Origin: Lytechinus pictus
Taxonomy: Eukaryota
Length of the DNA stretch: 64,000 nucleotides
Assembly: GCF_037042905.1 (NCBI RefSeq)
Contig: NC_087246.1
Location: 35,774,001-35,838,000, forward strand
Direction: 5' to 3'
The position numbers and the translations under genes are program-made. Under the pieces are notes generated by a model. It was not told where the DNA came from. It made no database searches and saw nothing but the letters and a program-made list of their open reading frames with translations. Numbering within the stretch: position 1 is the stretch's first letter; each line of letters begins with the position of its first letter. This document shows positions 2,579 to 61,573 of this stretch, piece after piece.

Positions 2579-4568
2579 TCAGACAGTCGTAGCCGGTACG
2601 GCGGTCGTTGGCCCAGGGGTAGGTGGCGGGTTCGTATTTCCCCGTCGGGTTGGCATGGTGGGAGGATGGAAAGCTCTCCTTGCTTTAAGGGCTGTTAAGT
2701 TAAAAACACACATGTTTTAATTTCATTAAAGATCTTATGATTAAGATGATGCGAAGAAGTGGCATTAAAACATGGTTCTGGTTTCATGATAATCACTTTT
2801 CTTCAACACAATTACTTTTGACCTTTTACTTTGAGTTCTGAAAGAATTCTAGGGAATATGTAATTAGATTGTGAAAGTAGTTTTGACCCTATTATTGTCA
2901 AATAAGTATAGAGAACGGGAGAGGAGATCAATTAATGGAACGAAATGAAGAGGAGGTGCCGAGTATGCAGAAAGAGAAGAAAAATAAAAAGAAGGAGAAG
3001 AAGAAGAAGAAAAGAAGAAGAAAAGAAGAACAAGAAGAACAAGAAGAATAGGAGCATAAGGAGGAAGAAGAGAATGAGGAAAATATAGGAATAATCAAAA
3101 TGTGCAATAAAACAAATAAAGGTGAAGAGAAAGATTGATAAGATATAATAACAATGATGACAAATGTGTGAAAGATTTATCAAGAAGTTATATATTTATA
3201 TCCTATCTGTCCCGTTGTTGCTGCCTTGCCTCTCATGGTCTCACTATCCGACTGGCCCATACATGAACCGTCATTTCCCCCAGTTATTTATTGTTTTGTT
3301 TATCATTTAAAACGATAATAAACAAAATACTCACTGGTACAACGATCGACGACTGTTGAAGGTGTTGCACACACGATCTCCATAGCGGCACAACCATCGA
3401 AGACCGTCTGGACAACGGAACGTTCATCGAGGTAGCAGAGTTGTTTATTGTTCGCCTGATCGAGGTAGCTCTCGACTCTGTCGCCATTGTAACCCGGAGT
3501 TTCTCTCACCCCCTCGGCGTAGTCGTGCACGTGATCGAGGACCTCAGAGTTACAGCCACCCTCGCCTCGCTTCTTCTCCTCGTATCCGGGGCAAGACTTG
3601 ATAAGATGTTCGTAGATACTTTGTTGACCATTTCCATGATGAGCTGTATAACACAAAGAGATGGGTATTGGCGGTAATGCATTTGTTAAATGTATTAAAT
3701 TTTTTAATATTAGTAACAATTCAATAGCAATAATAATAATAATATAAAATAACCGACATGGTAATAATCATATTGATATGAGCAACTAGGTTTATGATAA
3801 TGATACTGATAACAATCACAAGCGCAACAAGAAAAAAATATTCCACTATGACCCCATTGTCCCACTCCTCTGAACATGCATGTGTACTTGTACTACTTAA
3901 TTTGATATAAATTCTAGTAAAATAACAGTTTTTACTACATACGCTATTATACTACTACTACTACTACTACTACTATTACTACTACTACTACTACTTCTAC
4001 TACTATTACTACTATTACNNNNNNNNNNNNNNNNNNNNNNNNNNNNNNNNNNNNNNNNNNNNNNNNNNNNNNNNNNNNNNNNNNNNNNNNNNNNNNNNNN
4101 NNNNNNNNNNNNNNNNNNNNNNNNNNNNNNNNNNNNNNNNNNNNNNNNNNNNNNNNNNNATGCTACTACTTTTGTTTATACTAATAATGCTGGCAAATTT
4201 GCAATTGCACTTGTCTCTCCCATTTACTTACGGAATGCTTCAGATATCGCGATGTAAGATAACACAACCAGGCATATTACAGCAGTTCGTTTCATCTGAA
4301 AAAAGAAATATATATATATATATACAATCACAATCAGGTGAAGCAATGTGGAAATCACTTATAGCCTAAAGTCTTTAAAAAAGTAGTACAGTTAGTACTA
4401 CTTTTTAATTCAAACACTCTTCAATTTACTGTAACATGGAATATAAGACAGTGATATATTACAAAGAATATCTAGAATGAAGAATAAACTAAATTTCCAG
4501 ATGAAGCTAAAGCCAAAAAAATGAAATGTTTGAAGAAAATTCTACAATTCACTTACAGTTGTGGCCAT
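2579..4568 (-). CDS. G1: secreted six-Cys domain protein, 165 aa; exons 4557-4568, 4232-4295, 3335-3643, 2579-2691
   Basis: All introns are GT-AG with phases 0/1/1, and the spliced CDS (498 nt) is open: MATT|MKRTAVICLVVLSYIAISEAF|PHHGNGQQSIYEHLIKSCPGY...GCAAMEIVCATPSTVVDRCT|TLKARRAFHPPTMPTRRGNTNPPPTPGPTTAVPATTV*. It has a hydrophobic signal peptide, and TATAAATA lies at 4666-4673 (-). Intron 2 contains an N gap. Confidence 0.85.
4019..4159. other. Assembly gap (N run) within a (TAC)n microsatellite
   Basis: 141 Ns. Confidence 0.99.
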
Positions 4569-4637
4569 GTTGGATATTCAAAGATACTACGATGACTTCT
4601 TAAGGTTGCCTTAAATATTTTCTTAGCTCCTCTGCTC

Positions 4638-4673
4638 GAATGATCCCTTGAGACCGACCTGCTCATATTTATA
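4638..4673 (-). promoter_or_regulatory. G1 core promoter (TATA + Inr)
   Basis: TATAAATA lies 32 nt upstream of TCATTC, just 5' of exon 1. Confidence 0.65.
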
Positions 4674-5624
4674 CTTTTCTCACTCTCCAGGCAAACAAAC
4701 TAAACATCACTTCTTGTAGAAGAAATAAAAGAAATATGTTGCCAGCAACTGTTCATTGAGATTAAGACAATGTCCACATTAAGGACAGTGAAATAATAGT
4801 AGCCTAGAGTCAGTGGATTTGTCAATTGTCAATTCATCACAGAGAGAATGTCAGGGGGCCTCAAGCTTGCCACAATCCTTCTCAGTCACGTCGGTAGAAC
4901 CTGCGCTTTGTTTCTTTGTAAGATGGATTTCAATTGATTTGATACAGAGTGTTATGAATGAAATATTTGGATTATTGCTTGTTTCGTGACATTAAAGAAT
5001 GTGAAAGTGACCGAATTATGAGGTCAATTGACTTAAGATACTCCCACATTGAGGGAAATTATTATTTTTTTTACTTAATAGTTCACTTGGAACAACTCAT
5101 ATTGTCTCTGTTTTATTTTTGTAACCTTCAGTTTGTCCGGTACTTCAACTAGGTCTTTTCATTCCCATTCGCTTTGACATTTAGTCGAAATATTTATAGC
5201 AGCTTCAAATTCAGCAGAATGAGTATTTTGTTTCATCATTCGAATAATTAATGTGATATTTTAAATTTCCGTTACAGCGTGAATTCATCCTCTACCATAT
5301 TACATGTATAGCCTTATTTATGTTGCTTCAAATTACAACTTCTCCCTTCTTACATCTTTTGATCAATATTGCTTATATTTTTTTAGCAATTCATTAAAAA
5401 CAAATTCAAGAGAGATAAGTTCTTTTTTATATTTTAAAACGCTGTTGTAATGTATCATGTCAGACTCTCTTTATCTATTAAACTATAAATATGCTACCTC
5501 CCCTTCTCTCTCTCTCTCTCGGTTATTTCTCTATCGCACACTCATATACGCGCGCACACACCCTCCCACATACACACTACACAAACCCGCACATCAACAC
5601 ACACCCAATCGAGTAAGAGTATTG

Positions 5625-8744: not shown

Positions 8745-11700
8745 TTAGGCGGTCATGGTAGGTTGATTGGTTGGAAAATTAGCTGTAGTAGGAGATACGG
8801 GGTTGGTTGTAGTCGGTGCCTGGGTGACGTCTGTATTGTGAAAAAGAGAAGAGTTAAAGGCAAGTTGGTTATATCTGCTGACATGTAACTGATTTTTATA
8901 TCATTGCGATCTCATTGTATTTTTTTTTTATATTGTAAACGTATGCATTTGGTAACATGCACTAATAAACTTCCAATTCCCCGTATGAGAAAAAAAAATC
9001 AATTATAAAATCCAACAACAACAACAACAATACATTAATTTGCTTAAGGAATTGTTATAACATGATGTTATGGATATCATGTTATATGAGAGGTACAAAA
9101 TAATACTTGCAAATTATTTGATATATAGATCTGAGTTCAAAATAAGTATCTTAACATGTAGATGTTTAATCGATATATACATAATTTGTAAACAATTTTT
9201 TTGCATTACTCCTATGTGTTTAAGATCGCATGCTCGATCTGTAATGAAAATTATAAGTCAGAAAAAAATGGAACCAGTGGGATTCGAACCTGCCATCTAC
9301 TGCTTTCCGGGCAGCGACTTAACCACCAGGCTATTCTGATTCACGGCTAAATCACGATGAACTGGAAATAAAATACCCTCGATCCTCTTCTTTCCGACTT
9401 CCTAGTTCCATTTTACTGACTTATGATTTTCATTACAGATCGAGCATGCGATCTTAAACACAAAGGAGTAATGCCGAAAATTTGTTTACAAATTATAATT
9501 TCCTTCTATTAAAGCCTCTTTATTTACGATATATACATGTTTTGTTTTGACCTGCGGGCTAGTAAATTAATTAAAGGTTAAATCAGATGATATAATTTCG
9601 CCTCATCACTCACCTTGGCACCTAATGAGGTTCACCTTTGAAGGACCACAAACTGCTTCCATGGCTGCGCATGCGCTGAGGATGGCGCCTCCCTTGGCGT
9701 TGCAGAAAACATTTCCCCCTTGAGCCAAGTCTAGGATCTCCTCTACCTTGTTACCATCCCAATTCTGAAAGGGACCTCGAGGTGTTTCCAGATTTTCTCC
9801 GTGTTCTTTCACGTCTTCGATCACGTTTTCAAAGTCGCAGCCGCTAGCACTTTCTTTGTTGTAGAATGCACACATCTCTAGGAGGTACCGCGTTTCCAGT
9901 GAAGTGGTAGTAATTGCTGAAAGAGAACATTGAAAAGCATAATTGGTCACATATCTTTTTTAAACCGTGCACAGTCACGTCGGCATATGCATGTATTAAT
10001 TTTCAAAAATTTGCTGTAGGATAAAAGAATAGTGTAAGTGCATATCAACGCTGCTGATCAAGGGCAGAAGTGCCATGCCGGGATTCGAACCTCGGACTGA
10101 GTGAGGTCTCTCAGACCACACAACCACTGAAAATCTACAAATCCCTCTGAATAATTCGATATTAAATGTATGACGTTAATTATAAAAGGATTGCCAAAGC
10201 CTGTCATTTACTTCCTAACCATCAACATGATCAGAGAGCGACGAACTGTGAACAATTTTAGAATAAATTAACAAAAGAGCGGGGAAGAGTTTCAGAATAG
10301 AGAATTATCTTGGGGCCTAATGAATGCAATTTGTAAACGATTTGCAGGATAGCAAATTTGAATTTTTTTGTACCGTTTATTTTTCAGTGGCATTAAGAAC
10401 GCAGTTATTTATACATGATCAGGCATGTCAAGGTTAACACGTTTATTTCTCTGTCTCTCTCTCTTTCTATGTCTCTCAAGAGAGAGAGTGAAAAAATAAC
10501 GCATGCATTCTTGAAAGTTAATTTCAACAAAAATAAACTTGAATTGTTTTCAGAGTAGTAAATAATTATCGGAGTGCCGGTAGAGTTCCTTAGAGAACAT
10601 AGGTAAATTTCGAATTAATGTAAGGTTTTGATACCTCATTAACTCTTACTGTGCCAATACGAATACCCCTTGACTGCCAGGGGTATTCGATGGAATCCTA
10701 AATTGACCGAAACGTGAGCAGCGACTGATTTTAAAACGGTCATAATTTTTTACCCGTACGTTGTATAATAAAACTTTCTAAACATGAAATGATGCATGGT
10801 TCATGGGCTTTATGGTCGTGTTATTATCTTTCATATTCGCGTTTGGAAAAATTGAGAAAATATGTAATATTTTACATCGTTTTTTTTCAATAAGTAAAAC
10901 CTAGAAAATAATGATTTCATGAACATTTCAAAGAGTAAATAACCTGAGGAATTGTAGAGATACCAAGAAATTACGAAGATAAAATGAAAGTTCAATGTTT
11001 AACCTTTCAAATGACGTATCTATTTATGATATTGAACAAACAGAAATAACGAAAAAGTATGCTCTTTTGAATGAAATACTATTTTGCTATTCAAGTTATT
11101 TCCTCTGAAGTACGAGAGAGTATGTATAAAGGCATTGTCGTCGATCAAGTGACCAATCACAGCACAGCTGCGATCCCCACGCAAACACACACAACAATAT
11201 ATTAGTGCCATGTATCTTCAAAGTGCGGCCAACCATACCCTTTCATTCTATAGTCTTCAAAATAAGACTCTGTAATTTTTTTTATTCGTAGTGTAAAAAA
11301 CAAAGTTATTGCCAGTCAGAAGGAGACAAAATATAAAAGAACTAAAGATGATATATTGAAATATAGATAAAGAGGGGTCGGACAGATTCAATACTTACAA
11401 GTTTGGGGTATAAAATCCCACAAAATAATATGGGCGTTCTTGGCAAAGTGCACAGAAGTAAGAAAAAAAAAGTTTAAATTTTTTTGTGAATCAAAGAAGA
11501 GGGAATGCAGATCAGTTACAAACAACAAAATCAATACAAATTTTCAAAAATAAAATAGGCCTATTTGTTCTGTATTACTGGTCTGACCAAAGTAGCCACC
11601 TGTTAACATTCTACGTGAGTACATTCTTTTGTTCATGCCACCAAGTCATGAACAATAGATGCCCAGACTCTCTTTCATGAGGAATCTCTAATCCGCGCTC

Positions 11701-13896
11701 CCTCCTGACCTATTATCTAAAAGAAGAGTAATTTAGCACAGGATGTTCATAGAAATCGGGGCTCACGCGTGTCTTTTGATTTGACTTTTGAATACTTTCA
11801 AAGGTTCCGGTATTGATTTCTTATGGGTGACCCAGGTAAAGAGAAAACAATTTGCCCCCCCTACAGAAAAATCCTGCATCCGCCCAGGGCCTCCCCAGCT
11901 CGTAGCACTATCCATGGTAAAAGAAATAATTTGTTCAGATAACATAGTGTACAATAATATGCGTGGTATAAAGAATTGTAATATTCAACCCGTCATCATC
12001 ATTATCATTTCCATTTCTACTCTCTAAAGTCGATTTAAAATCCCCTTGATAGTGACGTCAATGATGCAGCAACTAACAGGTCGGTCTAATCGGTTTTGTT
12101 AATGTATCCCTTTCTTTCTTTTCCTAAAAACATCTGATATCACTTTATAAACTCCGTTTACTTTTTCTCTGACCAATGGTTTGATTTAGCAAAGGAAAAA
12201 CATCCACCTTGAAAAAAAATAAATCTTGAGACGAATAAAGCGGTATTATCGGCCGTTTTAATTATTACATTTATTTTTCTGCTTCTTCCTATTTAATTCG
12301 AGGAAAATATTGAACGATTCATCTTTTTTTGAGAAGTTTGAATATGATATTGATAAGCATAACAATAATTTTTTTAATGATTTGGGCTGTAAAAACACAA
12401 ACGAATATGAACCGTTATTTACCTGATCTTAAGTTTATGAAGAGAGAGTTTGGCTGCAGAAGGAATGCAATTGATATGATTACAACAATTATTTTTGAAT
12501 AATAATCATGATGATGATGATGATAATTCTGATGGCAATAACATTAATAATAATAAAAAGAAGGTGAAGGAGAAAAATAATGATAATAATAACAATAAAA
12601 ATAATGATTATGATAATAGTAATACTAATAATGATAATAATGATAACAATAATAAATGAATAAATAAATAATGAGTGTGATTATTGCAGTGCGCATACGA
12701 GAGTTGGAAATGACAGCCTTCTTTACTCATATATTTATAACGAGAACATTTTTGTGAGAATGCTAAAAACAAAGTATAAGACCTTTCCCCCGCCCCCTCC
12801 CCCACCCCCCCCAAAAAAAAAATCTCTCCCAAACCGTGCACATTTGCAGGCAGAAAGAGCCTTGACACAAGAATACTACCATACGGGCCTGCAAAAGACC
12901 CGATCGATAGCTCATGAATATTCATGTAACAATAGCGAATGGGCGAGTAGTGTTGGGTGAGGAACATCGTACCGCTCTGTCATTGGTCAGTTCCGAGCTG
13001 AATGCCTTTGCACATTCGCCTTTGCTCTGCCCATAGAAGTATGTGTATTGCTACACACAACCGTTATATCACACGTGTCTATAGGGGAAATCTTGATTCA
13101 GATCGCGGCAATATCCAAAATCAACTCTTCAAAATAATGATGCAAAAATACAATTTTACTCAAAAAATGTCTATGTAAACCACTATTTTTTATATGATAA
13201 AATGAATTGTGAATTAATTGCCAGTATAACAACATTAAAAACACATAATATGGTGTTGATTTTCTGGCTGTAAAATTGGTTAAACAAAAAAAAATATTTG
13301 GGCACGTATACGTGCCAATGGCACTAGAGGGCTAAGGGCACGCATAGCTGCCAATGGCTCTTAAAGAGTTAAACCAAGAAATTGTATTCTTTAAAGCCAA
13401 ATGAAGGGGGGGGGGTAAAACATTGAACATTGTAAACAGCTCCGACATATAATGTTATACTTACGTTGCCCTTTCACATACGTCAAGGCTACCAAGCACA
13501 GACAACCAACAATGGTGATTTTCATCTGTGAAGTGGGAAATAAAGGTAAATAAGTAATAATAACGTAACGAAACTGATATAGGTTATCTGTATAACCTAC
13601 ATTTCTTCCTTTGTAGGTGCGTGTCTATATCACCCGTCTAAGCTCGTCTACCGAATCCGGTCCTCGCAGCTTTTTTTAGAGGAATCATTTCCTGTCGAGA
13701 CCCATACCATTATTTTTTTTTAATCGATAAATTAAATAATGTAAAATTTGAATAAACAATGAGATAAACATAATGAAATTACATGACGAAACATTCCTGG
13801 GGCAGGATGGAATGATTCATACCGCCACCTTAATCTTAATATAACATAATATTAACATAATCTTAATCAAATAAGTATACTTACACTACTTGCCAT
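8745..13896 (-). CDS. G2: secreted six-Cys domain protein, 153 aa; exons 13885-13896, 13465-13525, 9614-9916, 8745-8830
   Basis: Spliced CDS 462 nt: MASS|MKITIVGCLCLVALTYVKGQ|PITTTSLETRYLLEMCAFY...ACAAMEAVCGPSKVNLIRCQ|DVTQAPTTTNPVSPTTANFPTNQPTMTA*. Splice sites are canonical with the same phases as G1. TATAAATA at 13989-13996 (-). Confidence 0.85.
9181..9496. mobile_element. MITE with ~95-bp TIRs enclosing a tRNA-like Pol III cassette (9269-9342, -)
   Basis: Arm ataatttgtaaacaa...gatcgcatgctcgatctgtaatgaaaa is repeated in inverse at the right end. The interior has an A box, a B box (GGTTCGAATCC) and a T7 run. Confidence 0.75.
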
Positions 13897-18271: not shown

Positions 18272-18408
18272 NNNNNNNNNNNNNNNNNNNNNNNNNNNNN
18301 NNNNNNNNNNNNNNNNNNNNNNNNNNNNNNNNNNNNNNNNNNNNNNNNNNNNNNNNNNNNNNNNNNNNNNNNNNNNNNNNNNNNNNNNNNNNNNNNNNNN
18401 NNNNNNNN
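18272..18408. other. Assembly gap (N run)
   Basis: 137 Ns next to ATT/TAC microsatellites. Confidence 0.99.
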
Positions 18409-20555: not shown

Positions 20556-21509
20556 TAGATGAGCGTTAACGTGCGTGAGAGAGTGGGTGTGCGTGTACAC
20601 GTCACTCTCTCCTTCTAATATTCCTCAATTTTCTCTCAATTTTCATTCTTTTTTGTCATCTTGTTTCTCTCCTATAATAATTGTTTTCGCATTATTCCCC
20701 ATTATTATAATCCAGCCATCCTTTTTTACATTTTCACAAAATACTCGCGATACCACTTTTCCACATCAAAAGTTCATATAAAAAACTGTTCCAGAATAAA
20801 ACAAAGTACAAAGTTGTTGAAATAATCTGAATTGCTGTTTTATTACGTGATATACATAATTATCAAAAAATGAAATCAACAAAATGTACATGCACAAACA
20901 AACAAAAAATAGGGGAATGACATAAGAACAAAAAAATAGTAGTACAAAGAAATTTAGTAAAATGAAAAATATTTTGAAGGAAATACATTGAAATTGTGAA
21001 TAGTTTTGTCTAGTTCGTCCCACTTAGGCACATTAAAATTTAAACAAGTAATTACAAATTTTCTATGAAAGACAAGGTTCTCTAGCTTTTTGGTAGTCAT
21101 AAATGAACATCACAATCTTATTGTAGTGAAGAGATACAGTGGGTTCTTTTTTCTTATATATTACAAAATGAAAATTGCCTTGACTGAGAAAAAGAAATGT
21201 TTCCCTCATCCTATATATTGATCTATACGTAGGGTTCCATTCGATAAAGAGGCAAATCCGATTGATGGAAATGAACGTTACAGTTGTAATACTAGACGTT
21301 AAAGCGTTATCATTCTAAAGCAATCGTTTGATGGCTTTATTGACTGCTTATTCATAATTTTTCTATTGTGATCACTGGTGCAGAGAGATGATGTGACTTC
21401 CTTCAGTGATCAGCTTGACCGGTGATTGGTTTGTTAAGAGTGGATAATGGGCACCGGTCAATCAACGAGAACCATGCTCAAACACCCAGTAATATATCCT
21501 TGTCTTGAG

Positions 21510-23226
21510 TTACACTGCATTTGTAACAGGTCCCATATCTGCAATATTGAGAAAAAAAGTCAATGAGATGGTCGATTGATAAAGAAATTTCCTCACCCAG
21601 AATATTACATTTTTATCAGATAGTCTTGGGATATATTATATTTCCACTTGAAAAAGCATGAAAAATATTATACTCTTTGAATTAGTCTAATTAGATCAAT
21701 GAGCCATTCAAGAAGATATGCCCTCATGATAATTAATCCTGAGTTAACAAAATACTTTCAAAAAATGTTTTTTAATCAAGACCATTTTGCCAGTACCTGA
21801 ACGAATTGCTAACCTAGAGATGACCGCAATATTCATACTATATTTGTGTCTGGATCGTACTCACCTTTGCAGTTCATCACATTGACATTGTTCTCACAGA
21901 CCTGCTCCATGGCTGAACAACCATCCTTGAGGTTAGTCACCTGTTCTCCATCGGGCGAGAAGCACAGCTTCCCTTCCTCTGCCTTCTCCAGGTAATCCTC
22001 AATCTGCTCCTCATCGATGCCAACGAGTCCCTCGATCTCATCCGCCTCGTCGATGACTTCCTCGATGACGTCAGCATTACACGTGCCGCCTTCGTCCATG
22101 AGCTCCTCCCTGAACAGGTCGCACGCGGCGTCGAGGTGAAGGGAGATCTTCGACGTGAAAACTGCAGGAAATGAGGTAGCAATGAGAGTAAATGAATGAC
22201 TTCCTGATCCGAGTTAAGTGAATTACGATCGAGGGTTCACTTATACCGTGATCATGACATACTTGCAACTGCTTCAAAGGGGGTACTAATACGGCTATAC
22301 TACTTTCATTAGAAACTTTCATGACCTGTGTGCTCAATTTAAAGGTTGAGGTTCGAATCAAATCAATGAACTTCAAACCATTGCCCAACAATCTATGCAG
22401 GTCATGACTTTGTCGTGTGCATGTGTTGTACCCCTCGACACAACTTCTATTAAATTGGAAAAATGCACAAACATCACAAACTAGCATTTTTGATTACTCA
22501 GCGATCTGCTCTAGATAACCTAACACAGGGGCCGTGGAACGGTTTTCAAAGTGTGGGGGGGGGGGGGCTGACCATGCAAAAAATCACAATCATATGGTCA
22601 TTTTTACGTTTTAGTACATGGATTCAGAAAAAAGTGGGGGGCTGAAGCCCCCCCCCCCCCCCCGCTTCCGCGGCCCCTGTAACAAACTACAAACTTTGAT
22701 ATCTTCAAAAAGACTTAACATACCCTTAGCTTCGGCACTTCTTATAGCTGCACCAGCTATCACAACAAGGCAGAGTACAGCAGCAACATTCATCTGAAGA
22801 AGAAAATGTAATAAAGCAGATATTAGTTTTGAATTGCTCAGCAAGAAATGGAGGGAGGGAATCGCCTTCATGTGACGTTTTCATGACTTTTATCATGTGA
22901 CGGCTAACAAACTGACATGTACGTCTGCAACAGATAAAATGGACAATTATTCGATTTAATTCCAGTATAGTTTTAAGTAGAAAAATACAAGGAACAAAAT
23001 AATGTATATCTATCAAAAATATTGCTTGCGATCTTAGGCGGTAATAATAATGTGAAGGAAACGATCTTTTTTAAACTTATGATATTTACCATCTTTTCAT
23101 TGTTGGTACGTTTGCTATTTGAAAACTTATTATATGATAGGCATTTGTTTTCTTTGCATTTTGAACAGCCATCTTTTACTTCTACGATTGATTCTTTTTT
23201 TTGAATGAACTCACCGAAATGCCCAT
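21510..23226 (-). CDS. G3: secreted, highly acidic six-Cys domain protein, 135 aa; exons 23215-23226, 22724-22793, 21865-22161, 21510-21538
   Basis: Spliced CDS 408 nt: MGIS|MNVAAVLCLVVIAGAAIRSAEAK|VFTSKISLHLDAACDLF...DGCSAMEQVCENNVNVMNCK|DMGPVTNAV*. Canonical splice sites. TATAAAA at 23391-23397 (-). Confidence 0.87.
22526..22679. mobile_element. Short poly-G/poly-C MITE in G3 intron 2
   Basis: TIRs caggggccgtggaa...ttccgcggcccctg. Confidence 0.7.
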
Positions 23227-23361
23227 TATTATTTGATGTCCTCAACGGCTTGAAATTTAAATAAGAATTTTGAAAGTTCTGCAACGAATTGGCGAAGCTT
23301 GCTGGCTTACTGATTCAGTAAATCCGCTCACTTGATTTGTTCACTGGCTCCGAATGAGATC

Positions 23362-23397
23362 GAATGAAGTTGAAGCAGCATTAACCGCCATTTTATA
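23362..23397 (-). promoter_or_regulatory. G3 core promoter (TATA + Inr)
   Basis: TATAAAA lies 32 nt upstream of TCATTC. Confidence 0.65.
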
Positions 23398-24384: not shown

Positions 24385-24635
24385 GTTTAGGTGTGATCGT
24401 ATGCTATTGCATATGCTTTAAACGAAAAGGAATAAATCAAATATATACACTATTCAGCGGTAAAAGGTGATCGCAATTCTGGAAAACATAATCATTGCCA
24501 TTGGAAAACGTCCCCTCCCCTCCAATGATGAAAGCAATTACTCGCAATCATTTTAGAAAACCCTGACTGATAATGATAGTTTAATGTACGATGGGGTGCA
24601 GCAAAAGATTAAGAATGCTATGTTTTTTTGGTAAC

Positions 24636-30763: not shown

Positions 30764-30796
<33 letters not shown>

Positions 30797-34700: not shown

Positions 34701-34890
34701 TTCATATCATTCACATATATTCACATTATGGTCGTGAGCCTGATGTAACTATTATCACAAATTGTGGAAGTTTTTTTTTTGTAATAAAGATTGTATAATG
34801 CATATAGTTTTGTCATGTCCCCTACTTCAAAAAAATTGCGATAAACCCAGGCGATAAACGAATCTTTTGTCAACTTACCGAAATTCCCAT
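31775..34890 (-). CDS. G4: secreted six-Cys domain protein, 150 aa, closest to G3; exons 34879-34890, 33689-33758, 32738-33034, 31775-31848
   Basis: Spliced CDS 453 nt: MGIS|VKLSCIFCLMCLCSSLVKETQAN|VFISKAALYLSDACTLF...DGCATMDAVCNGKENVMDCD|QMATVTNETPSTTAKTTTRSRRID*. Exons 1-3 have the same lengths as in G3 (12/70/297). TATAAAA at 35085-35091 (-). Confidence 0.87.
32200..32560. repeat. Purine-rich (GAA/GAG) low-complexity tract in G4 intron 3 (a similar tract lies at 2940-3140 in G1 intron 3)
   Basis: Visible directly in the sequence. Confidence 0.9.
34013..34700. mobile_element. MITE with AAAAGGGGTTAGGTCC subterminal repeats plus an adjacent partial tandem copy, in G4 intron 1
   Basis: The motif occurs several times forward, inverted at ~34382-34400, then repeats again from ~34415. 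Confidence 0.6.
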
Positions 34891-40900: not shown

Positions 40901-41996
40901 TTATTCCGGTAAAACAATTCCTGGCATGTATTCATGAATATTCATTAGGTGGGCTGGTGATGTCATATCCCCAATCGTTCTTTTTTGTATTTATTATATG
41001 AAATTAGGTTTATTCAATTTTTTTCTACCAAGAACTAAAACAATTGGATTGACAACTGATTAAGTACATTAGTTATTTATTGCTGCAACTTATTTCATCA
41101 TAATGGAGACACATCATTTACACATTTATGAAAACAATGAAACAATTATGATTTCATGCAGCAACAGAAGAAAAAGGAAAGTGGGGATGTGGCATCAACC
41201 CACCTAATGAATATTCATGAAGACATGCCTAGAACTGTTTCACTGGAATAATGCAAATCTTTACAATTCAGTAACTTCGTTAATTTGTTATCCGATTTTG
41301 ATGAAATTTTCAGCATTTTGCTCAGTGAATTTTACTCTATAGATATAAATATCTTTAGCCCGGAGCATCCCATTAGCATGATTACTGCCTTTACTCCTGT
41401 AACCATGGTAACTGATGTTGCCAGTGACTGTTGTCATTCAGGGGTGTAATGAAGGAGCTGGAAATGTTGTTAGAAGACTTCTCAGAAAAATGTCAGAGAA
41501 TGAAGATAGCGTGCAACAACAAAACAATCATTTTTTATACATCCTCAAAGTAAAATGCCACAATAAATTGGTATCGAATCGTCACTTTCTCCAGAAAGCT
41601 CAATCTATACGTTGATGTTTGAAAGTGCAGCGCGGAGATTTAACAAGCAATTAAATAATGATAGAACATTGTCTCTAACCTTTCTTTCAGCTCGTGCACG
41701 TCATTGTAGTCTTAAAAAAAATTGATTAAATAATTTATTAATAATACCAGTTATTTAACTAACTGGTATTCAAATTGAATGTTACTAAGCTGTAACAACG
41801 AGCGCCCCTATACGCAAAAAGCACCCAGGAATTGTAATTCCTTTTAATGATCATGATCATGATGGTATTAATGAGGGCGTTATAATTTTAATTTATATCT
41901 TTTATGTTTCTCTTTTTTGATCTCCCAGAACCACTGACTAAGAGGAAAAGCCACGTGAAAAGTAGCTCCAAGAAATCTGTGCGAAGAAAGGAATAA
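37973..41996 (+). CDS. G5: inverted, divergent six-Cys family member with basic tail, 144 aa; exons 37973-37984, 38951-39014, 39554-39844, 41929-41996
   Basis: Spliced CDS 435 nt: MTTM|IRITQIAVSLVIGFAVIQYTI|AKKPEPDRSIAAVVMSLCTPY...DTACHVIAHLCDYMQLGELMKCPHA|QPLTKRKSHVKSSSKKSVRRKE*. Same phases and Cys spacing as the other members. The first and last exons are less certain, since an alternative acceptor exists near 40655. Confidence 0.75.
40779..41372. mobile_element. Kolobok-like palindromic MITE in G5 intron 3
   Basis: ttaa|aggctctgggctga ... ttagcccggagcatccc, with inverted internal arms. Confidence 0.7.
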
Positions 41997-45095: not shown

Positions 45096-46892
45096 TCAGT
45101 CTGTTTCACTAGATTCAACGGATGATGATTCGGCAGAGACAGACGAAGAACGTCTGAAACGAGCTGCAAGCAAAGAAATATAATTAGAACAAAATTGGAA
45201 TGATCATTAACATACGAAGAAACTCCTAAGGCTAACCAGAACATTGATATGCAGTGGTGCTAAAAATTTAGTGAACCCCACCAAAATATGCACTCGTTCA
45301 TGTTGATGGTTGAATGTATCGACAACACTACAATGTTTGATGAGCACAGAGAAACAAACTGAATGTATTATTTTTTCACCTGACTTCACATTAAAATATC
45401 TAAAAGATGGCAGAACTTGATCGCTTTTAAATATGCTCATTTTTTGGTGGGGTTCACTAACTTTTTAGCACCACTATATCAGTCAATTTCCACGTATTTT
45501 GTATCACTACACTTACATGACTTTGGACAATTTCACCGTGTCAGAAAAAAGTAGAGAAATTTGAATAAGACATAAGGAGATATTGAAATATAACCCACCT
45601 GTAGAAGAACAGTCGACAACTTCAAGGCAAATTTTCTCCAAGATTTCACAGGCATCAGCGCTATCCTGCTCTCCTTCCTCTACCAAACACACCATATCAT
45701 TCTCAGCTTCATCAAACAGGTTCTGTTCAGTAGATGTGAGAAGTCCTCTTAGGTCTTCTTTACACGTGTCAACCACCTGCCTGTATCTGTCACATAGAGC
45801 TTCGAACTGTGCAGTGCGATCGGTAGTTTGGGCTAGAAATCAAGGAAATTATCAAATAATGATGATTCGTTGGCTTTACCAGTATAACACACATAGCAAA
45901 CAGATAATTTGCATAATATAATAATGATCTGCATCATCGTAATAAGATACAAAATAATTGCACCAAAAAAAAATAATAATAACAAGTTTTGTTGTGTAAT
46001 ATGGAAATTCGCTTTCCTAAAAATATGAAATATCATACACATCAGCAATTTACAAAAATGATGAAAGACATAATAGATATATACCCGAGTAAGAAATATA
46101 TCTGCAGATTTCGAAAAATACATCTCCTTCTCTATTGATTTTTAAATGAAAAAATAAATATTATACCTTTTACTTCCATTGCAAAACATGCAACGAGACA
46201 CAGACAAACGCAGAATGTTTTTACCTGTAGAGGGGATGAATAGATAAAATACTCAATTTTATACTATATACAATTACAGTTTAAATCGTGAAATGAATTA
46301 AAGTATTAATTGAAATTCAATAATCAAGGAAGTCCATGTTATTGCAGATAAGTGTAAGGATCTGTTCGGACCAATTTCGATCGTTCATTAGATTTAGAAT
46401 TAAAGTTTTTACAAATAAATCACACAAGGTATAAGATTCCTACCCCAAAACGGAAGGAAAATAAATGATTTAAAAAAAATGAATCATAAAAACAAATGAG
46501 GATAAAATGAAATGAAATATAGATATAAAACGAGAAGGATATGATTTTTTATTTTAAATCTTAGGTTCCCTTGTATTTTCAATGTAGAACAGAAAATGAA
46601 GAAATTGGTGATATGATTAATATAAATGGAATTCAATAGCAAATACCATTAGTATACTCCGACCTGTGCGATTTTAGATAAGCATTTGGTATATAATACA
46701 GATTTCTATTTCTATTTCATTGTAAACATTTTTCAAAAGATATTTAATTTTATGTTATCAAATTTAATATTTTTTCTTCTCATTATATCCATAATATTCT
46801 TAAAAAGTGAAAACTAAATCAGATTTACACAGTTTAAACAGTTTCTGCTGGAATGATTTGGAAAATAATGGTGTACTTACCGATTGAGCCAT
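45096..46892 (-). CDS. G6: secreted six-Cys domain protein with RFRR + Ser/Glu tail, 123 aa; exons 46881-46892, 46167-46224, 45599-45832, 45096-45163
   Basis: Spliced CDS 372 nt: MAQS|VKTFCVCLCLVACFAMEVK|AQTTDRTAQFEALCDRY...DACEILEKICLEVVDCSST|ARFRRSSSVSAESSSVESSETD*. All four exons are conserved in frame in duplicate G7. TATAAAA at 46994-47000 (-). Confidence 0.85.
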
Positions 46893-46966
46893 TTCAGGAG
46901 TTTTGCTGAGTCGAGCGTTTTGAAAAAAGGGTAAAAAGTTAAAAGTTATTTTGAACGCTGATGAGT

Positions 46967-47000
46967 GAGTGATTAATGACTATATTTTCTCCCTTTTATA
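46967..47000 (-). promoter_or_regulatory. G6 core promoter (TATA + Inr)
   Basis: TATAAAA lies 30 nt upstream of TCACTC, and the arrangement is conserved in G7. Confidence 0.65.
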
Positions 47001-53377: not shown

Positions 53378-56300
53378 TCAGTCTGTTTCACTAGATTCAA
53401 CGGATGACGATTCGGCAGAAACAGACGAAGAACGTCTGAAACGAGCTGCAAGTAACGAAAAGAAAAATGATCATGATTATTAACATACGAAGAAACTCCT
53501 TAGATTCATATGTATGCATATCATAAATTATGAATATGAATATATTCTCTATATTCAAGGATAACATATATCTATTCTAATTACTTCGAAATACTTGTAT
53601 ATCGGTGTGTTTTTTATAGTTTGGAAAAGGAGAGATTATAATAACCTAGCCCAGGTAACAATACAGCGTTGGACCAACGTTGGATCAACGTTGGGAATTT
53701 TTTTCCCAACGTTGCCTCAACGTTGGCAGGCCAACGTTGCATCATCGATAGAAGTGCACGCGCATACATCGTCAGACCAACAACATTTCCAACGTTAGTT
53801 CAACGTTGTCCAGCAACAATGTTTCAACGTTGTCTGGCAACGTTGATCCAATGTTGGCTAAATAGACAAATACAACATTGCTACAACGTTGGTAAGCAAC
53901 GTTGTATCATCGATAGAAGTGCACGTCCATACATCGTCAGACCAACAACATTTCCAACGTCAGTTCAACGTTGTCCACCATCAATGCTCCAACGTTGGTA
54001 TAATGTCGGCTGAGTCATCAATAACAGCGTTGCTGCAACGTTGATGGGCAACGTTGAAGCAGCGATGGACGTGCACTTGCATACATCGTCAGTCCAACTA
54101 TGTTTACAACGTTGGTTCAACGCTGTCCAGCAACAATGCTCCAACGTTGTCTGGCAACATTGCTCCAACATTGTTACAACGTTGTCACAACGTTGCTCCA
54201 ACATTGCTCCAACGTTATTCCAACGTATGGCAGTAATTAACAAAACATTAATTGGTTTCAAGGTGAAGTCCACCATTACAACTCTACACTCAAATCTTTA
54301 TCATCATATGTCTTATCCTATCCTAAAATCCTACATCCTAATCCTATATCCTATTCCTATCATCCTACACCTATCCACTGTAACCTGTCATTGACTCCTA
54401 TATATAGAGCAACTTTGCTATACTTGGCAGAATACAGTTAATATCATTTTCCACACTTAACCTTGAATATTTCACTTAGAATAATATGTTTTGATTATAT
54501 ATGATATGGTAATGGAGCCACATACTTTTCTGAAACTTTTCATGGTGGAAATATTGAATAAACATAAATACTCTAATTATTATAGCAATATTACCTAAAA
54601 TTTTGGTCATTTACTGATGTAATGAATATTCATGAGTGCATAATCATTGTCCAGATGAGGCAGGTATGGCAGCGTTGGTCCAATGTTGGTCCAACGTTGG
54701 GTGACGTTGATCCAACGTTGGTATAATGTTGGTCCAATGTTGATGGAAAGTTGATTCAACTTTAGTCCAATGTTAGTCCAACGTTGGCGTAAACGTTGAT
54801 TCAATGTTTGTCTAATATCGGTTAAATGTTGTTGTAACGTTGATTCTTTGTTGGTCTAATTATAAACAAATCCAACGATGCGCCATCTCCATCAAACAGT
54901 TTTCAACACTGTGCCATCATCATCTGTAATCTGTTCATGATTCTATCAAAAAACATTACAACTATTATTACAGCTATTCATTTCTTTTCATTCTTTCTGT
55001 TACAAGTCTCTTCACATAATTAAGAGAAATCAAGATAATTACGTGTGATATTTATTGAGGCCTTTGTAGCATTCAAACTTTTTTGACATCCTCTTTTTCT
55101 CAAACAAGACTAATACCAAAAAAACATATGCATATGTAATAAAAATTAAGATGTATTACATTTTCTTGCGAGTTGCAATCTCTGTTTCTGTCTACAATTG
55201 TTTAATGACTCGGTATGCAATGCCAATTGCAACGTCAGTAATCATCACAAAAACTCACATGTGTAATTGCAGTCTCTCAGTATTTACAAAATCAAAAAAG
55301 GAGGTCGCGTAACTTGGCCTCACTCAGAGTAACGTAGCTACTGCCTACTGTAACTAAAGAGTGCCTCTTTTTGATTAAGATAGAAGTCAACTGATATCTC
55401 AATATGCATGGCCATGGCCTAGTCTCGCTCGTGCCATAACTATTAAATGATATTTCAGCGTCAAGTGTAGCATGCCTCACATAGCAACTACAGGTTTGAC
55501 TGCAGTTGGAAAACACTCGGTCCAGGCTAGGCCAGGCAGGACCGACCAAGTCAATTCAAGGCAGCGTATAATAAATAAGGCAGGAATGCCAGGTAGCAAG
55601 TCATTTGGGTGATTTCAAGTACGGTGTACGGTGTTGAGTGCGTGAAAGGGCTGCTGAACTGAGCTCCAACACCAAGCGTAATATTATTTTTCATTGAAAT
55701 GTAGTAAAACTCTAATGATTTGCTCTCATCTTAAATGTAAAAGATAATTTTACGGAGATGGTTCGTCGTGTTCGCCCCCTGTTCGTAATAGCTACAGTTC
55801 ATCAACACCAACACTGAACTTTAAATCACGATTCTCCCAATCCCTGGGGTACGTCGGTGTTGCTGAATGGGGAAATTGCTTGTAGATCATCAACACCATG
55901 CAGCCACAGTGCAGTGTTGGGTTCAGCAGATGACAATCAACACCAGCCTTCAACACAAACTGCCGGAAATACACCATATTTTCCTAGGTCAATCTTAACA
56001 CCAGCCTGATTCAAGTACGGTGTTGTCACAACACCAACACTAACCCAGGGAGCTCCAGCCCGCTCAGCGGGCCGGAGCCCAGGGGCTTACCGTGTAATTC
56101 ACCATACCCACGGTAGTAGCGTGAAGTATGGTCTAAATAATTATCCGGATAAATAGTTAAAACAGAAATTAAGCACTTACCACGATTATATGGATGAAGG
56201 TCTAACGATTGGCAGCTTCCTGACATCGAGGTCTCAATCGGCCATTTTGTTTTGAATTCTGAAAGAGGAGAGCTACCGCGACAGAACTTTTCGTTTTTTT

Positions 56301-59300
56301 AGGTTCCAGTCTGTGCCTCGAATCGATGTCAGGAAGCTGCCACTCGTTAGACCTTCATCCATATAATCGTGGTAAGTGCTTAATTTCTGTTTTAACTATT
56401 TATTCGGATAATTATTTAATATTTAGACCATACTTCACGCTACTACCGTGGGTATGGTGAATTACACGGTAAGCCCCTGGGCTCCGGCCCGCGCAGCGGG
56501 CCGGAGCTCCCTGGGTTACACTCACACGTATTGCCAGGTTAGTATTAGTATACTGGGTTACACCAACACCAGATTTCAACACTGTACGTACTTGAATTTT
56601 GAAAATCATCCAATGACTGTTGCCTTGCCATTGGTATCGCATACTCGTTCCCACTCACACGTATTGCGAGGTTAGTATTAGTCACTCACACAAGCTAATT
56701 ACGAGGTTAGTTAGTATGTTATACTGTGCAGTGACTAGTGTTAAGTACTACTTTACTACTACTTACAGTACACGAATATACTAGCGTCGGACTGTACGCA
56801 CACAGAAGCTGACTCCGGGATCTTTCGGAGGGGATCAATGGTTGCAGTTACCGATTATCTGCAAGTGCAAAGAAAATTCAACTGTAGATTGTAGGTCCTA
56901 AATATACAGCTTATAAGTACTGTTCCAGATCACTAGATATTCTGGAATTTACTTATCTATATCCACTATCCAGTCCAAATTCTGCCAGATTCTTCAAGTT
57001 CAAAATTGAAGGAAGCAGACTACACAGACATGACAGGAGTCCGACGTCGCGACTAATTCTGCGCATCAGAATAGTATGGTATTTTTAAATAGGCACATTT
57101 GATGCTTGTATTTCCTTCTTCAATTTCTTCTAGTTATGTGACGGTAGGCCTATGACATATCTCGTACTTACTGTGAAAGGCCTTGCCAGCTGCAAAGGAT
57201 CGACGAGGGCGTTTCTGGAAATTCTGGTCTTGAACTACATTTTTTTTCTTGTTTTTCTTCTTTATTTTCTATATTAATCGACACATTTGCATCCCCAGGT
57301 GCATGCAGCCTCTCTATTCTACCCCATCTTTATTTTTGTTTTCCCCTTAGACTTAGTTTTAGTTCCTCTTTCCCTTCCCATTATTTTCCTTCTCTCTCGA
57401 TTTCTTTTCCCCTTATTGCTGGGGGATACCAAGGGTGACATGGATAGACAAGCAAACTTACTTGATCGACCCCCCCCCCCTTGGCCCCATTGGAAATTAT
57501 GCCAGTAGTCTTGTCTTGTCTTGGGTTAAGTCGGCATATGCAGACTTGCTGTACTCCGCCAACTTTATCAATTATCAATTCTCCAATGAACCAGTTTCTA
57601 ACGTTCTCAACACTGTGTATATTATGCCAGGATATTATGTTGACTGTCAAACAAATATCCAACAAACTATAGTTTCCAACATTGTGTCAATGTTAACTGT
57701 CCAATAAACTATTCCAATTACGCTGTCCACGTTGTGCCATTGTCCGTTGTTCAACAACTCTCCATCAAACTAGTTTCCAACTTTGTCAACGTTGTGCCAT
57801 TGTCGACTGTCCAACAAATCTCCAAGAAAATAGTTTCCAACGTTGTTCCTTTGTCGGTTGTTCAGCAACTCTCCATCGAACTAGTTTCCGACGTAGTCAA
57901 CGCTGTGCCTTTGTTGGCTGTTCAACACCTATCCAATCAAACACGCGTTTCCAACGTTGTGACGTTGTTGGCTGTCCAACAAATCTCCAACACACTAGTT
58001 TCCAATGTTGTGCCATTGTCTGTTGTTCAACAACTTTCCAACGTTGCCAACGTTGTGTCATCGTCGACTATCCTACTGATCTCCAATCTACCAGTTTCCA
58101 ACGTTGTGCCAGTGTCAGTTGTTCAACGACTTTCCATCTAACTAGTTTCCAGCTTTATCAACGTTGTGTCATTGTATACTATCTAACTAATCTCCAATCT
58201 ACCAGTTTCCAACGTTGTGCCATCGTCGACTATCCAACAAATCTCCATCGAACTAGTTTCTAGCTTTGACAACGTTGTGCCATAGTTGGTTGTTCAACAA
58301 CTTTCCATCGAACTAGTTTCCAACGTTGCCAACCTTGTGTCATCGTTGACTATCCAACTAATCTCCAACCTACTAATTTCCATCGTTGTGCCATTGTCGA
58401 CTGTCCAACAACTCTCCAACTAACAAGTTTCCAACGTTGCCAACGTCGTGTCATTGTTGATTGTTCAACAACTTTCCAGCGAACTAGTTTCCAACGTTGC
58501 CAACGTTGTGTCTTTGCTGGCTGTCAACAACTATCCAATCAAACGTGTCTCCAACGTTGTGACATTGTCGACTGTCCAACAACTCTCCAACTTACTAGTC
58601 TCCAACGTTGTGCCATTGTCGACCGTCCAACAAATCTCCAACAAACTAGTTTCCAACTTTGTCAACGTTGTGCCATTGTCGGTTGTTCAACAACTTTCCA
58701 GCGAACTAGTTTCCAACGTTGCCAACGTTGTGTCTTTGCTGGCTGTCAACAACTATCCAATCAAACGTGTCTCCAACGTTGTGACATTGTCGACTGTCCA
58801 ACAACTCTCCAACTTACTAGTCTCCAACGTTGTGCCATTGTCGACCGTCCAACAAATCTCCAACAAACTAGTTTCCAACTTTGTCAACGTTGTGCCATTG
58901 TCGGTTGTTCAACAACTTTCCAGCGAACTAGTTTCCAACGTTGCCAACGTTGTGCCTTTGCTGGCTGTTCAACAACTATCCAATCAAACGTGTTTCCAAC
59001 GTTGTGACATTGTCGACTGTCCAACAACTCTCCGACTAACAAGTTTCCAACGTTGCCAACGTCGTGTCATTGTTGATTGTCCATCATCTTTCCATCAAAC
59101 TAGTTTCCAACGTCGATTCAACGTTAATCCATCAAGTTTTCCCAACGTCCAACGACTTTCAAGTTTCCAACGTGGAGCCAACGTTGGCTTGTTACCTGGG
59201 AGATATTTCGTTTGATATGTGAATAAAGAAGGCCAGAAAATTGTAAAAGAGAGAAAGAGAATTAAAATGCTGATAATTATGATGGAAATGCTAATTCTAT

Positions 59301-61478
59301 TCAAAAGTTTCAGTGAGTTCAACTATGTAAACCGAGAAGAGGAACAATCTATAAGAGGATCTTTTGCATGTGTGTCATAAATGCATTTGGACGAGATCAC
59401 AGTGTCAACAAAAGTACAAACAATGGCATAAGGGTATTTGAAGATATTACTTACCTGTAGATGAACAGTCGACAACTTCAAGGCAAATTTTTTCCAAGAT
59501 TTCACAGGCATAAGCGCTATTCTGCTCTCCTTCCTCTACCAAACACACCATATTATTCTCAGCTCCATCAAACAATTCCTGTTCAGTAAGGGTAAGGCGT
59601 CCTCTTAGATCTTCTTCACACGTGTCAACCACCTGCCTGTATCTGTCACATAGGGCTTCGAACTGTGCAGTGCGATCAGTAGTTTGGGCTACAAATCAAG
59701 GAAATTATCAAATCATGATTTTTCGTTGAATTTACCAGTAACATAAATGAATAACCAGTGGAGCAATAAGCCCAAAAGAATTGAGGTGGCAAAATATGGC
59801 GTATCGGGAAAAAAAATTATACATATAAAAGCGAGCGTGCAAAAATGTCGTCATTTTTATTTTCAAAATCCTTTTTTTGTGATAATTTTGACATAACATT
59901 TAGAAAATAATATATTTCATCCTTCTCTCTTTCTTTCCTTTCCTTTTTGTCTTGTTCGTAAAACTTTTGAGGATGGCAAGCGCCCCCATGACCCCCCCCC
60001 CCCCCCCCGTCTGTGCGCCAGTGAGAATCAATATAGTACAAGACAAAAACAATCAGCTCTATTCTTACCAATGGTGAGGACAGAACATGGCAAAACTTCA
60101 ATCTCATTTATGGGTTCACAAATCTGGAATAGCCTTCCTGATGAAGTAAAACGGCTTAAATCTGTAATTCCTTCCGCAGAGCTCTTAAAAACATTTTCAT
60201 ACAAGAATATTCATGAGTTCCTCAATCATTTGTAAATATTGTATATATGTTTTAATTCATTTGTATGCAATTCTTGCTTTTACCCTATTGTGCTAGACCT
60301 ATTATTTTGTTTTATACACTAGTTATGTTATTTGTCGAAGAGCATGATTTGTTAACTTACTATTTAAACGTTCATGCTATCAATTATGATTATGTATATT
60401 GTAGGATAGGGTCTCCACGTCCACTAGCAGTACTTGCTATTTTTGTGGAGTCCTATTACCATTAAAGTTTATATGACAATTTACCCTGTATCAATGTATT
60501 TTGACATTATTTGGTAATAAATTCAGTTCAGTTCAGTAACAAATCTATGATTTATATTGTGCAATAATAATCTGCACCATCATGATAAAACCAAAATCAT
60601 TGCACCAAAATGAACAAATTGACAAGTTTGGTTGTGAAATGTGGGGAAAATATTAACATCCCCCAAACATAGATGTATCATATATAAAAGCGATTTCAAA
60701 ATGATGAACTATACCCAAGTGAGGAATATATCTGCAAATTTCGATTTTTCTCTATTAATTCTTAAATGAAAAAATGAAAAAAATATATACCTTTGGCTGC
60801 CATCGCAAAAACTGCAACGAGACACAAACAAACGCAAAAAGTTTTTACCTGTAGAAGGGAAAATAAATAAAATATTCAATTCATTTGCATACTCTAACAT
60901 CATAGTTTAAATAATCCAAGAATTAATTGAAATTTAGGTAAGACTGTCTTTTTGGAAACAACTTTAAGGATCTTTTCGGGTAAATTCCCTTGTTCATTAA
61001 AATTAGACTTTATTTCTTTACATAGATCTCGCAAGATAAATAACACCCCCCCCCCCTCAAAAAAAAGGAAAGGAATAAATAAATAAAATAAGTAATAAAA
61101 TAAAACAGGATGAAGAGTGATAATTAAATGGAATTAAAAAAATATAACATAAAATAATATAAAAATTGTAAAATTGAAGGAATTCAAAGATAATAAACCT
61201 AATGATTAAAATAGATGGAATTTAATAGCATATACCATTGGCGGACAAAAACATAAAGGTATACCCCGAATTGTGAGATCGTATATAAACCTCTGCTTTG
61301 GTATAATACATATATCTATTTCTATTTCACTGTAAACACTTTCAGAAAGAAATTAAGGCCCATGTCATCAAATTCGTTCTTTTTTTCTCATTATATCCAT
61401 AATATCAGATTTACACAGTTAGAACAGTCTCTGCTGGAATAATTTGAAAAATAATATTGGACTTACCGATTGAGCCAT
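53378..61478 (-). CDS. G7: recent duplicate of G6, 123 aa; exons 61467-61478, 60791-60848, 59455-59688, 53378-53445
   Basis: Same exon lengths as G6 (12/58/234/68), intact frame and splice sites, 11 aa differences from G6. Intron 3 is enlarged by a 5.55-kb transposon and intron 2 by a LINE fragment and a MITE. TATAAAA at 61567-61573 (-). Confidence 0.85.
53650..59200. mobile_element. 5.55-kb non-autonomous DNA transposon (CMC/EnSpm-like) in G7 intron 3
   Basis: Perfect 12-bp TIRs CCCAGGTAACAA / TTGTTACCTGGG with a 2-bp TSD AG. Subterminal arrays of CAACGTTG lie at 53660-54850 and 57590-59190. The element is absent from the G6 intron, and no transposase ORF is visible. Confidence 0.85.
59756..60023. 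mobile_element. Poly-C MITE (cagtgg...ccagtg)
   Basis: Termini resemble the other hAT-type MITEs. It is absent from the G6 copy. Confidence 0.55.
60024..60536 (+). mobile_element. 5'-truncated CR1/L2-type LINE 3' end in G7 intron 2
   Basis: Translates to NQYSTRQKQSALFLPMVRTEHGKTSISFMGSQIWNSLPDEVK, the typical ORF2 C-terminal motif. It ends in AATAAA + (TTCAG)3. Confidence 0.7.
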
Positions 61479-61539
61479 TTCAGGAGTTTTGCTGAGTCAA
61501 GAGCTTTGAAAAAAATATTTTTTTCGAATGCTGATGAGT

Positions 61540-61573
61540 GAGTGATTAATGACTGTATTTTCTCCCTTTTATA
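61540..61573 (-). promoter_or_regulatory. G7 core promoter (TATA + Inr)
   Basis: TATAAAA lies 30 nt upstream of TCACTC. Confidence 0.65.

Follow-up and report, generated by a model that had tools for sequence, protein, structure and literature searches.

A tandem family of predicted secreted proteins with an undescribed six-cysteine domain in the sea urchin Lytechinus pictus

Among sea urchins, Lytechinus pictus is under development as a model for genetics. A stretch of 64,000 nucleotides of its genome (NCBI RefSeq assembly GCF_037042905.1, contig NC_087246.1, positions 35,774,001 to 35,838,000; hereafter the window, whose own numbering is used for all coordinates) contains seven genes, G1 to G7, which encode small proteins with a predicted signal peptide and an undescribed six-cysteine domain. 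A six-frame scan for the C-x6-C motif, together with tblastn, finds exactly seven exons encoding this domain in the window, six on the minus strand and one, that of G5, on the plus strand. A profile search of the whole genome returns the same seven domain exons in this interval and none besides. The original prediction had described seven intact genes of four exons each, and the frames and splice sites are unbroken where it had placed them.

The gene models were built by mapping homologous NCBI proteins onto the window, which gave the signal-peptide and tail exons, and then by searching for an ATG followed by three codons and a GT. Such a four-codon first exon lies upstream of every gene and encodes MATT in G1, MASS in G2, MGIS in G3 and G4, MTTM in G5 and MAQS in G6 and G7. 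All seven genes thus consist of an ATG with three further codons, a signal-peptide exon, a domain exon and a tail exon, separated by introns in phases 0, 1 and 1. The second exon of G4 to G7 opens with Val or Ile, not with ATG. The seven coding sequences are all multiples of three with no internal stop, and 21 of 21 introns run from GT to AG with a pyrimidine tract. Every domain exon starts at a strong acceptor in the same phase and has a length that is a multiple of three. The proteins are 123-165 residues long, and the domain exon accounts for about 77-103 of these.

G1 (2579..4568, minus strand) encodes 165 residues in exons 4568-4557, 4295-4232, 3643-3335 and 2691-2579, the last of which includes the stop codon, and ends in a Pro/Thr-rich tail. 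An assembly gap (4019-4159) lies within its second intron, whose donor follows 4232 and whose acceptor precedes 3643; the gap begins about 72 nucleotides past the exon 2 donor and stops about 375 nucleotides short of the exon 3 acceptor. In an NCBI model from a different L. pictus record, the exons on either side of the gap are likewise joined. G2 (8745..13896, minus strand) encodes 153 residues in exons 13896-13885, 13525-13465, 9916-9614 and 8830-8745 and has a Thr/Pro-rich tail. A second assembly gap (18272-18408) is intergenic, between exon 1 of G2 (13896) and the 3' end of G3 (about 20878). Neither gap touches coding sequence, and no gap sequence was filled in. G3 (20878..23365, minus strand) encodes 135 residues in coding exons 23226-23215, 22793-22724, 22161-21865 and 21538-21510; its 5' untranslated region extends to at least 23365 and its 3' untranslated region to about 20878. 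G4 (31775..34890, minus strand) encodes 150 residues, with a Thr-rich tail, in exons 34890-34879, 33758-33689, 33034-32738 and 31848-31775.

G5 (37973..41996) is the only one of the seven genes on the plus strand and is arranged head-to-head with G4. It encodes 144 residues in exons 37973-37984, 38951-39014, 39554-39844 and 41929-41996 and ends in a basic tail rich in Lys, Arg and Ser. The last two genes both encode 123 residues from the minus strand: G6 (45096..46892) in exons 46892-46881, 46224-46167, 45832-45599 and 45163-45096, and G7 (53378..61478) in exons 61478-61467, 60848-60791, 59688-59455 and 53445-53378. The third intron of G7 is 6009 nucleotides long because it carries a satellite-rich insert of about 5.9 kb (53503-59378) that is absent from the G6 unit; on either side of the insert G7 is collinear with the G6 unit. 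The tandem arrays that make up most of the insert have periods of 51, 111 and 222 bp at 57724-59113 and of 152 and 89 bp at 53867-54846, and generate long spurious open reading frames on the plus strand.

The genes themselves have already been predicted at NCBI, always as 'uncharacterized protein', and what is new is the domain family that they share. G2, G3 and G5 are identical to LOC135153298 (153/153 residues), LOC129280611 (135/135) and LOC129272308 (144/144), respectively. G4 matches LOC129280592 at 149 of 150 residues, and G1 is about 97% identical to LOC129280793. The nearest entries for G6 and G7 are LOC129280730 (114/123 residues) and LOC129280720 (118/123); both genes show 93-96% identity to entries within a group of L. 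pictus proteins that hardly differ from one another. A search of about 8.4 million full texts, with supplementary tables outside its scope, found no mention of the gene identifiers, protein accessions or peptide strings of the family.

Confirmation of the splice junctions by RNA-seq had been proposed, and for G3 the splicing is supported by RNA-like sequence and reads. A 561-nucleotide RNA-like contig from the same species contains 21865-22161, which is exactly exon 3, and 23215-23365; the 70 nucleotides between these two pieces equal the length of exon 2, and the introns have no depth. In a stranded RNA-seq run from a closely related species, reads fall on the exon bins of G3 only, with the first mate opposite to the gene strand. 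The G3 model derived from the contig and the reads equals the NCBI protein residue for residue. Sequence words from exon 3 of G7 are present at a share of 0.3-0.5 in transcriptome-sized runs from seven studies, and they differ among the runs of one study (0.44 in one, 0.00 in two others). As evidence of expression these shares are only suggestive, given that identity among the paralogues is about 90% and that the records of the runs do not give RNA as the source. Logan contigs with open reading frames of the family (SRR28370570-84) were rejected as expression evidence because their introns are read through, which makes the contigs look genomic.

These data also bear on the alternative that the set of seven includes dead copies, or open reading frames that arose by chance. 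Direct read evidence is confined to G3, neither G6 nor G7 has an exact NCBI match among the proteins fetched, and G7 has a 6-kb intron filled with satellite. Set against this are the intact frames of all seven genes and all 21 introns, and the presence of the G7 words in many transcriptome-sized runs. Between G6 and G7, moreover, exon 3 has a ratio of nonsynonymous to synonymous substitution (dN/dS, by the method of Nei and Gojobori, as used throughout) of 0.27, and the tail exon is conserved at 66 of 68 nucleotides while its flanks are about 65% identical. Dead copies among G1 to G7 are therefore extremely improbable.

The six-cysteine domain is encoded by the third exon of each gene. The spacings of its cysteines were reproduced exactly as first read: 12/38/14/6/9 in G1, 10/44/10/6/9 in G2, 13/38/14/6/8 in G3 and G4, 13/27/15/6/10 in G5 and 9/24/12/6/5 in G6 and G7. 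All members share the pattern C1-x2-[YF] and C4-x6-C5, with C6 5-10 residues past C5. Three further features had been described as kept in every copy. The aromatic residue at C1+3 and the hydrophobic pair-x-x-A are indeed present in all seven, but [DST][GA]C-x6-C fails in G7, which has Y-A-C; the C-x6-C itself occurs in every member. In an alignment of 31 sequences five cysteine columns are invariant, and the second cysteine is displaced only in the aligned rows of the G6/G7 type. The six invariant cysteines presumably form three disulfides.

The four genes G1 to G4 form the core of the family and find one another by BLAST with E-values of 1e-6 to 1e-31. The G5 subfamily aligns to the core profile in hhalign over 78 columns (91% probability, E 1.1e-6). 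The alignment of the G6/G7 subfamily to the core is weaker, and covers 40 columns in the C-terminal half only (52% probability, E 1.4e-4). Both subfamilies are homologous to the core, and their shared gene structure and position in the cluster add support.

The domain had been called unrecognised, and this holds for sequence and predicted structure alike: neither Pfam nor the PDB sequences yielded a match, and the only structural neighbours are paralogues in Strongylocentrotus purpuratus. Pfam searches with eight single exons and with 31 aligned members, at E-values up to 1, gave only scattered sub-threshold matches and no family. A family profile searched against PDB sequences found nothing under an E-value of 0.26. 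Saposin, insulin, CHH/ITP, insect OBP, EGF, Kazal and IL-17 had been excluded on the spacing of the cysteines, and none of them appeared in the Pfam, PDB profile or fold searches.

A model of the G1 domain was made with AlphaFold2 from an alignment of 14 sequences (predicted local distance difference test score, pLDDT, 86.6; predicted template modelling score 0.79). It contains four helices, a beta-hairpin that bears the third cysteine, a helix with the fourth and fifth cysteines, and a third strand before the sixth. The domain had been expected to be probably helical; the predicted fold of G1 is instead alpha/beta, with five helices and a three-stranded sheet. Among AlphaFold DB clusters the only real neighbours of the G1 model are two S. 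purpuratus paralogues, with template modelling (TM) scores of 0.82 and 0.77, so independently built models of paralogues agree. Foldseek searches against the PDB and Swiss-Prot gave no match, and TM scores in the ESM Atlas are 0.43 or lower. The model of the G6 domain is poor (pLDDT 57.7), which is why the predicted common fold is not extended to the G6/G7 subfamily; the order of elements in its C-terminal half is the same as in G1. These searches and models reveal nothing related to the domain, whether by sequence or by predicted fold.

One close known system for comparison is the six-cysteine fold of the saposin-like proteins (SAPLIP), which include the saposins, NK-lysin, granulysin and pERp1/MZB1. 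If the domain were a very divergent member of this group, or of another known helical disulfide fold, the family would not be new. The number of cysteines agrees, and the C-x6-C pair near the C-terminus recalls the C-x5/6-C of saposins. The arrangement around it does not: the first two cysteines are 9-13 residues apart, not 2-3, and the sixth follows the C-x6-C pair and does not lie within it. Neither SapB_1 nor SapB_2 matched any of the 8 and 31 sequences searched in Pfam at E-values up to 1, the G1 model contains a three-stranded sheet, and Foldseek found no saposin-like protein. We regard a hidden saposin-like origin as very unlikely.

The family is larger than the seven genes first reported. 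Seven is correct for the window, but the L. pictus genome as a whole holds at least 29 domain exons by profile search, all of them without internal stops. Twenty-three of these form a single cluster, about 222 kb long, that runs past the window on both sides; the remainder lie on this contig at a distance of 6.5 Mb and on two further contigs. After the window there are 11 further copies of the G6/G7 type in alternating orientation. In all, L. pictus has at least 13 copies of this type, and S. purpuratus has nine or more loci. Diversification by tandem duplication, as had been proposed, is borne out by the 23 copies in 222 kb and by the expansion of the G6/G7 type within species.

Of the 1.84 billion representative proteins covered by a full HMMER scan, only 20 matched, and every named one is from an echinoid, in agreement with the earlier view that the family is lineage-specific. 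The named members come from S. purpuratus, L. pictus, Lytechinus variegatus and Diadema setosum. Among annotated proteins the family is thus restricted to sea urchins, with none in other echinoderm classes. Given the relationships among echinoids, the occurrence of a member in Diadema suggests an early origin of the family within sea urchins. Lineage-restricted orphan families of this kind are common.

UniProt names the S. purpuratus orthologues of the G6/G7 type (P0016 and P0018-P0021) 'Syntaxin-5 N-terminal Sly1p-binding domain-containing protein'. This name stems from a sub-threshold match of one member to the Pfam family Syntaxin-5_N (E 8.5e-4); as an annotation it is almost certainly wrong.

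Individual members of the cluster can be followed between genera. The S. purpuratus orthologues of G1, G2 and G4 are LOC115926809, LOC105442049 and LOC105442045, and other family loci in that species include LOC105442046, LOC105442051 and LOC115918147. The annotation of S. purpuratus has contained these genes only since about 2015. Gene order and orientation are the same in S. purpuratus, where a G5 orthologue lies head-to-head with the G4 orthologue and is followed by a G3 orthologue of 135 residues and a G2-like gene. Downstream of the G3 orthologue there is a further S. purpuratus member, 48% identical to G2 (L001 21996-22310); as this is not the same gene as LOC105442049, the cluster in S. 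purpuratus contains additional copies of the G2 type. A maximum-likelihood tree strongly supports the pairing of G1, G2, G4 and G5, each with a gene of S. purpuratus. All genes of the G6/G7 type fall into a single clade, and within it those of L. pictus cluster together, which implies expansion or homogenisation within the species.

Between Lytechinus and Strongylocentrotus the dN/dS of exon 3 is 0.11 for G3, 0.14 for G4 and 0.07 for G5, with dS of about 1.0-1.6. The paralogues are therefore old, and each has been kept between genera under purifying selection. The heavy divergence noted in the original prediction is real between paralogues, but it is not a sign of ongoing fast evolution, given these values for orthologues. 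A rapid arms race, whether in immunity or in gamete recognition, is rejected on the basis of the same values.

The N-terminus of each of the seven proteins combines a basic n-region with a run of 12-15 hydrophobic residues, has small residues at positions -3 and -1, and was assigned as a signal peptide by eye. The UniRef label of the G1 orthologue is 'Secreted protein', and inspection of the models by eye, with no membrane-anchor predictor run, revealed no further hydrophobic stretch. The proteins of the family are thus predicted to be secreted. Acidic residues (D+E) outnumber basic ones (K+R) by 29 to 8 in G3, 26 to 14 in G4 and 25 to 11 in G6; the balance is reversed in G5, with 23 K+R and 15 D+E.

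Small, secreted, disulfide-rich proteins encoded in a tandem array would suit immune, antimicrobial or other defence effectors released from epithelia or coelomocytes, with diversity produced by tandem duplication. Other antimicrobial peptides that are rich in cysteine and specific to the lineage, the strongylocins among them, are known from echinoids, and G5 is cationic with a Lys/Arg-rich tail. A role of this kind is weakened by the strong acidity of most members and by the low dN/dS (0.07-0.14 between orthologues and 0.27 between G6 and G7), which has no sign of an arms race. One-to-one orthologues in a conserved gene order are a further point against it, as is a domain of 77-103 residues, far bigger than the known echinoid antimicrobial peptides. 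Defence seems quite an unlikely function for the family.

The fourth exon encodes low-complexity tails that differ from gene to gene. They are Pro/Thr-rich in G1, G2 and G4 and Lys/Arg/Ser-rich in G5, and many other members of the family have Pro-rich tails; the tail of G3 is nine residues long in both genera. The G4 tail ends in R-S-R-R-I-D, which places a convertase-like site two residues before the C-terminus, and the corresponding sequence in S. purpuratus LOC105442045 is R-P-K-R-I-D. In G6 and G7 the tail contains R-F-R-R and, after it, a stretch of 17 residues that is rich in Ser and Glu and includes three S-x-E motifs. The R-F-R-R sequence is present in G6, in G7, in all L. pictus paralogues of that type and in S. 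purpuratus LOC115918147. A signal peptide is thus combined with a conserved R-x-[KR]-R site in G6/G7 and in G4, at which cleavage is predicted.

The tail exons of G6 and G7, identical at all but two nucleotides, differ by synonymous changes only. Elsewhere the two genes are less alike, with about 65% identity in the adjacent intron and 3' flank, 92% in exon 3 and 84% in exon 2. The G6/G7 tail is also almost unchanged in S. purpuratus, where the domain is just 58% identical. From this near-identity relative to the flanks and to exons 2 and 3, and across genera, the tail is the most constrained part of the G6/G7 subfamily.

Conserved processing sites in small proteins with signal peptides raise the possibility that the family consists of secreted signalling ligands, similar to cytokines or prohormones, in which the domain or a released G6/G7 tail would bind a receptor and each paralogue would keep a conserved partner. 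The convertase sites have been kept, both R-F-R-R in G6/G7 and R-S-R-R in G4, which becomes R-P-K-R in S. purpuratus. Each orthologue is under strong purifying selection, and separate paralogue lineages have been retained since before the split between Lytechinus and Strongylocentrotus. The G7 words, at a share of 0.44 in one run and absent from two others of the same study, hint at stage- or tissue-specific expression. Less in keeping with ligands are the at least 13 near-identical copies of the G6/G7 type, which would be unusual; Pro/Thr-rich, mucin-like tails and a 17-residue Ser/Glu peptide are atypical of bioactive peptides, and there are neither amidation signals nor repeats flanked by dibasic sites. 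Signalling is possible, but we do not consider it probable.

We tentatively favour a role in the extracellular matrix or in secretions, with skeletal matrix or mineral control as the most likely form of it and mucus or adhesive as alternatives. The mucin-like or Pro-rich tails, the acidity, the Ser/Glu tail with its kinase motifs behind a convertase site and the amplification in two genera all point in this direction. The amplification of the G6/G7 type in both genera parallels the organisation of echinoid skeletal matrix families: the skeletal matrix genes SM30/SM50 and MSP130 form lineage-restricted tandem families with Pro-rich repeats. The SM30/SM50 C-lectin proteins and MSP130 resemble the present family in being lineage-restricted, clustered and secreted, with acidic or Pro-rich, low-complexity sequence. 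They differ from it in their domains, as Pfam finds neither a C-type lectin nor an MSP130 domain in the six-cysteine family.

For a matrix or secretory role we propose that the disulfide-locked and mostly acidic domain would serve as a stable binding module, and that the swappable tail exon would set where each secreted module ends up. The Thr/Pro-rich tails of G1, G2 and G4 may be O-glycosylated and mucin-like. In G6 and G7 a convertase would cut at R-F-R-R, before the 17-residue Ser/Glu peptide, which is a likely substrate of the Golgi casein kinase and could bind Ca2+ or mineral when phosphorylated. Amplification of the G6/G7 type might then provide for bulk output.

The released peptide would be comparable in its mode of action to vertebrate ASARM peptides (of the MEPE/osteopontin-type SIBLINGs) and to the phosphoserine clusters of casein and statherin. 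Like ASARM, the G6/G7 tail is C-terminal, short, rich in serine and acidic residues and equipped with S-x-E kinase motifs, with a protease site ahead of it. There is no sequence homology between the two, and the G6/G7 tail is carried by an unrelated six-cysteine domain. In its most specific form the proposal would be that echinoids invented a fold absent from the structures solved so far, that its domain exon, phase 1 at both ends, was joined to interchangeable tail exons which direct one module to several extracellular destinations, and that in G6/G7 cleavage frees a heavily phosphorylated peptide which controls calcium carbonate deposition in the manner of ASARM. As a whole this is speculative and on balance rather unlikely; if true, the release of an ASARM-like peptide would be an independent solution in a calcite skeleton.

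Several observations weigh against the matrix or secretory reading. Purifying selection at a dN/dS of about 0.1, like the conservation of convertase sites, would suit signalling ligands just as well. The tails, whose interchange would direct each protein, are short, at 9 to 37 residues, and G3 has almost none. A further point is the G6/G7 subfamily, with its modest alignment to the core in the C-terminal half only and the low pLDDT of the G6 model. The family is a candidate for echinoid-specific biology, be it in the skeleton, in secretions or in signalling, and for structure determination.

The window contains some other features. A sulfotransferase gene of about 321 residues lies between G3 and G4 on the plus strand (26311-28714), with a likely splice 26642|GT ... 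AG|28081. Its N-terminal open reading frame contains a PAPS-loop-like motif, and its C-terminal open reading frame matches the Pfam family Sulfotransfer_5 (E 9e-10). In the syntenic stretch of S. purpuratus, bounded by the orthologues of G4 and G3, no equivalent of this gene is present.

G6 and G7 share 94% identity over the 2.6 kb that lie upstream of them, exon 1 included (46815-49424 and 61400-64000), but only 69-86% in the gene bodies. This could reflect a recent conversion, a shared repeat or a part of the amplified unit. Both upstream stretches contain an identical open reading frame of 70 residues (48270-48482 and 62848-63060).

Interspersed repeats occur at 20000-20590, 22360-22755 and 24130-25700, where depth reaches hundreds to tens of thousands on both strands in all runs mapped. 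The second of these lies within intron 2 of G3 and adjoins long runs of G and C; none of the three is related to the genes. Just before the assembly gap at 18272-18408 there is an inverted repeat whose two arms (15201-16434 and 16691-17924), each about 1.2 kb long, are 81% identical.

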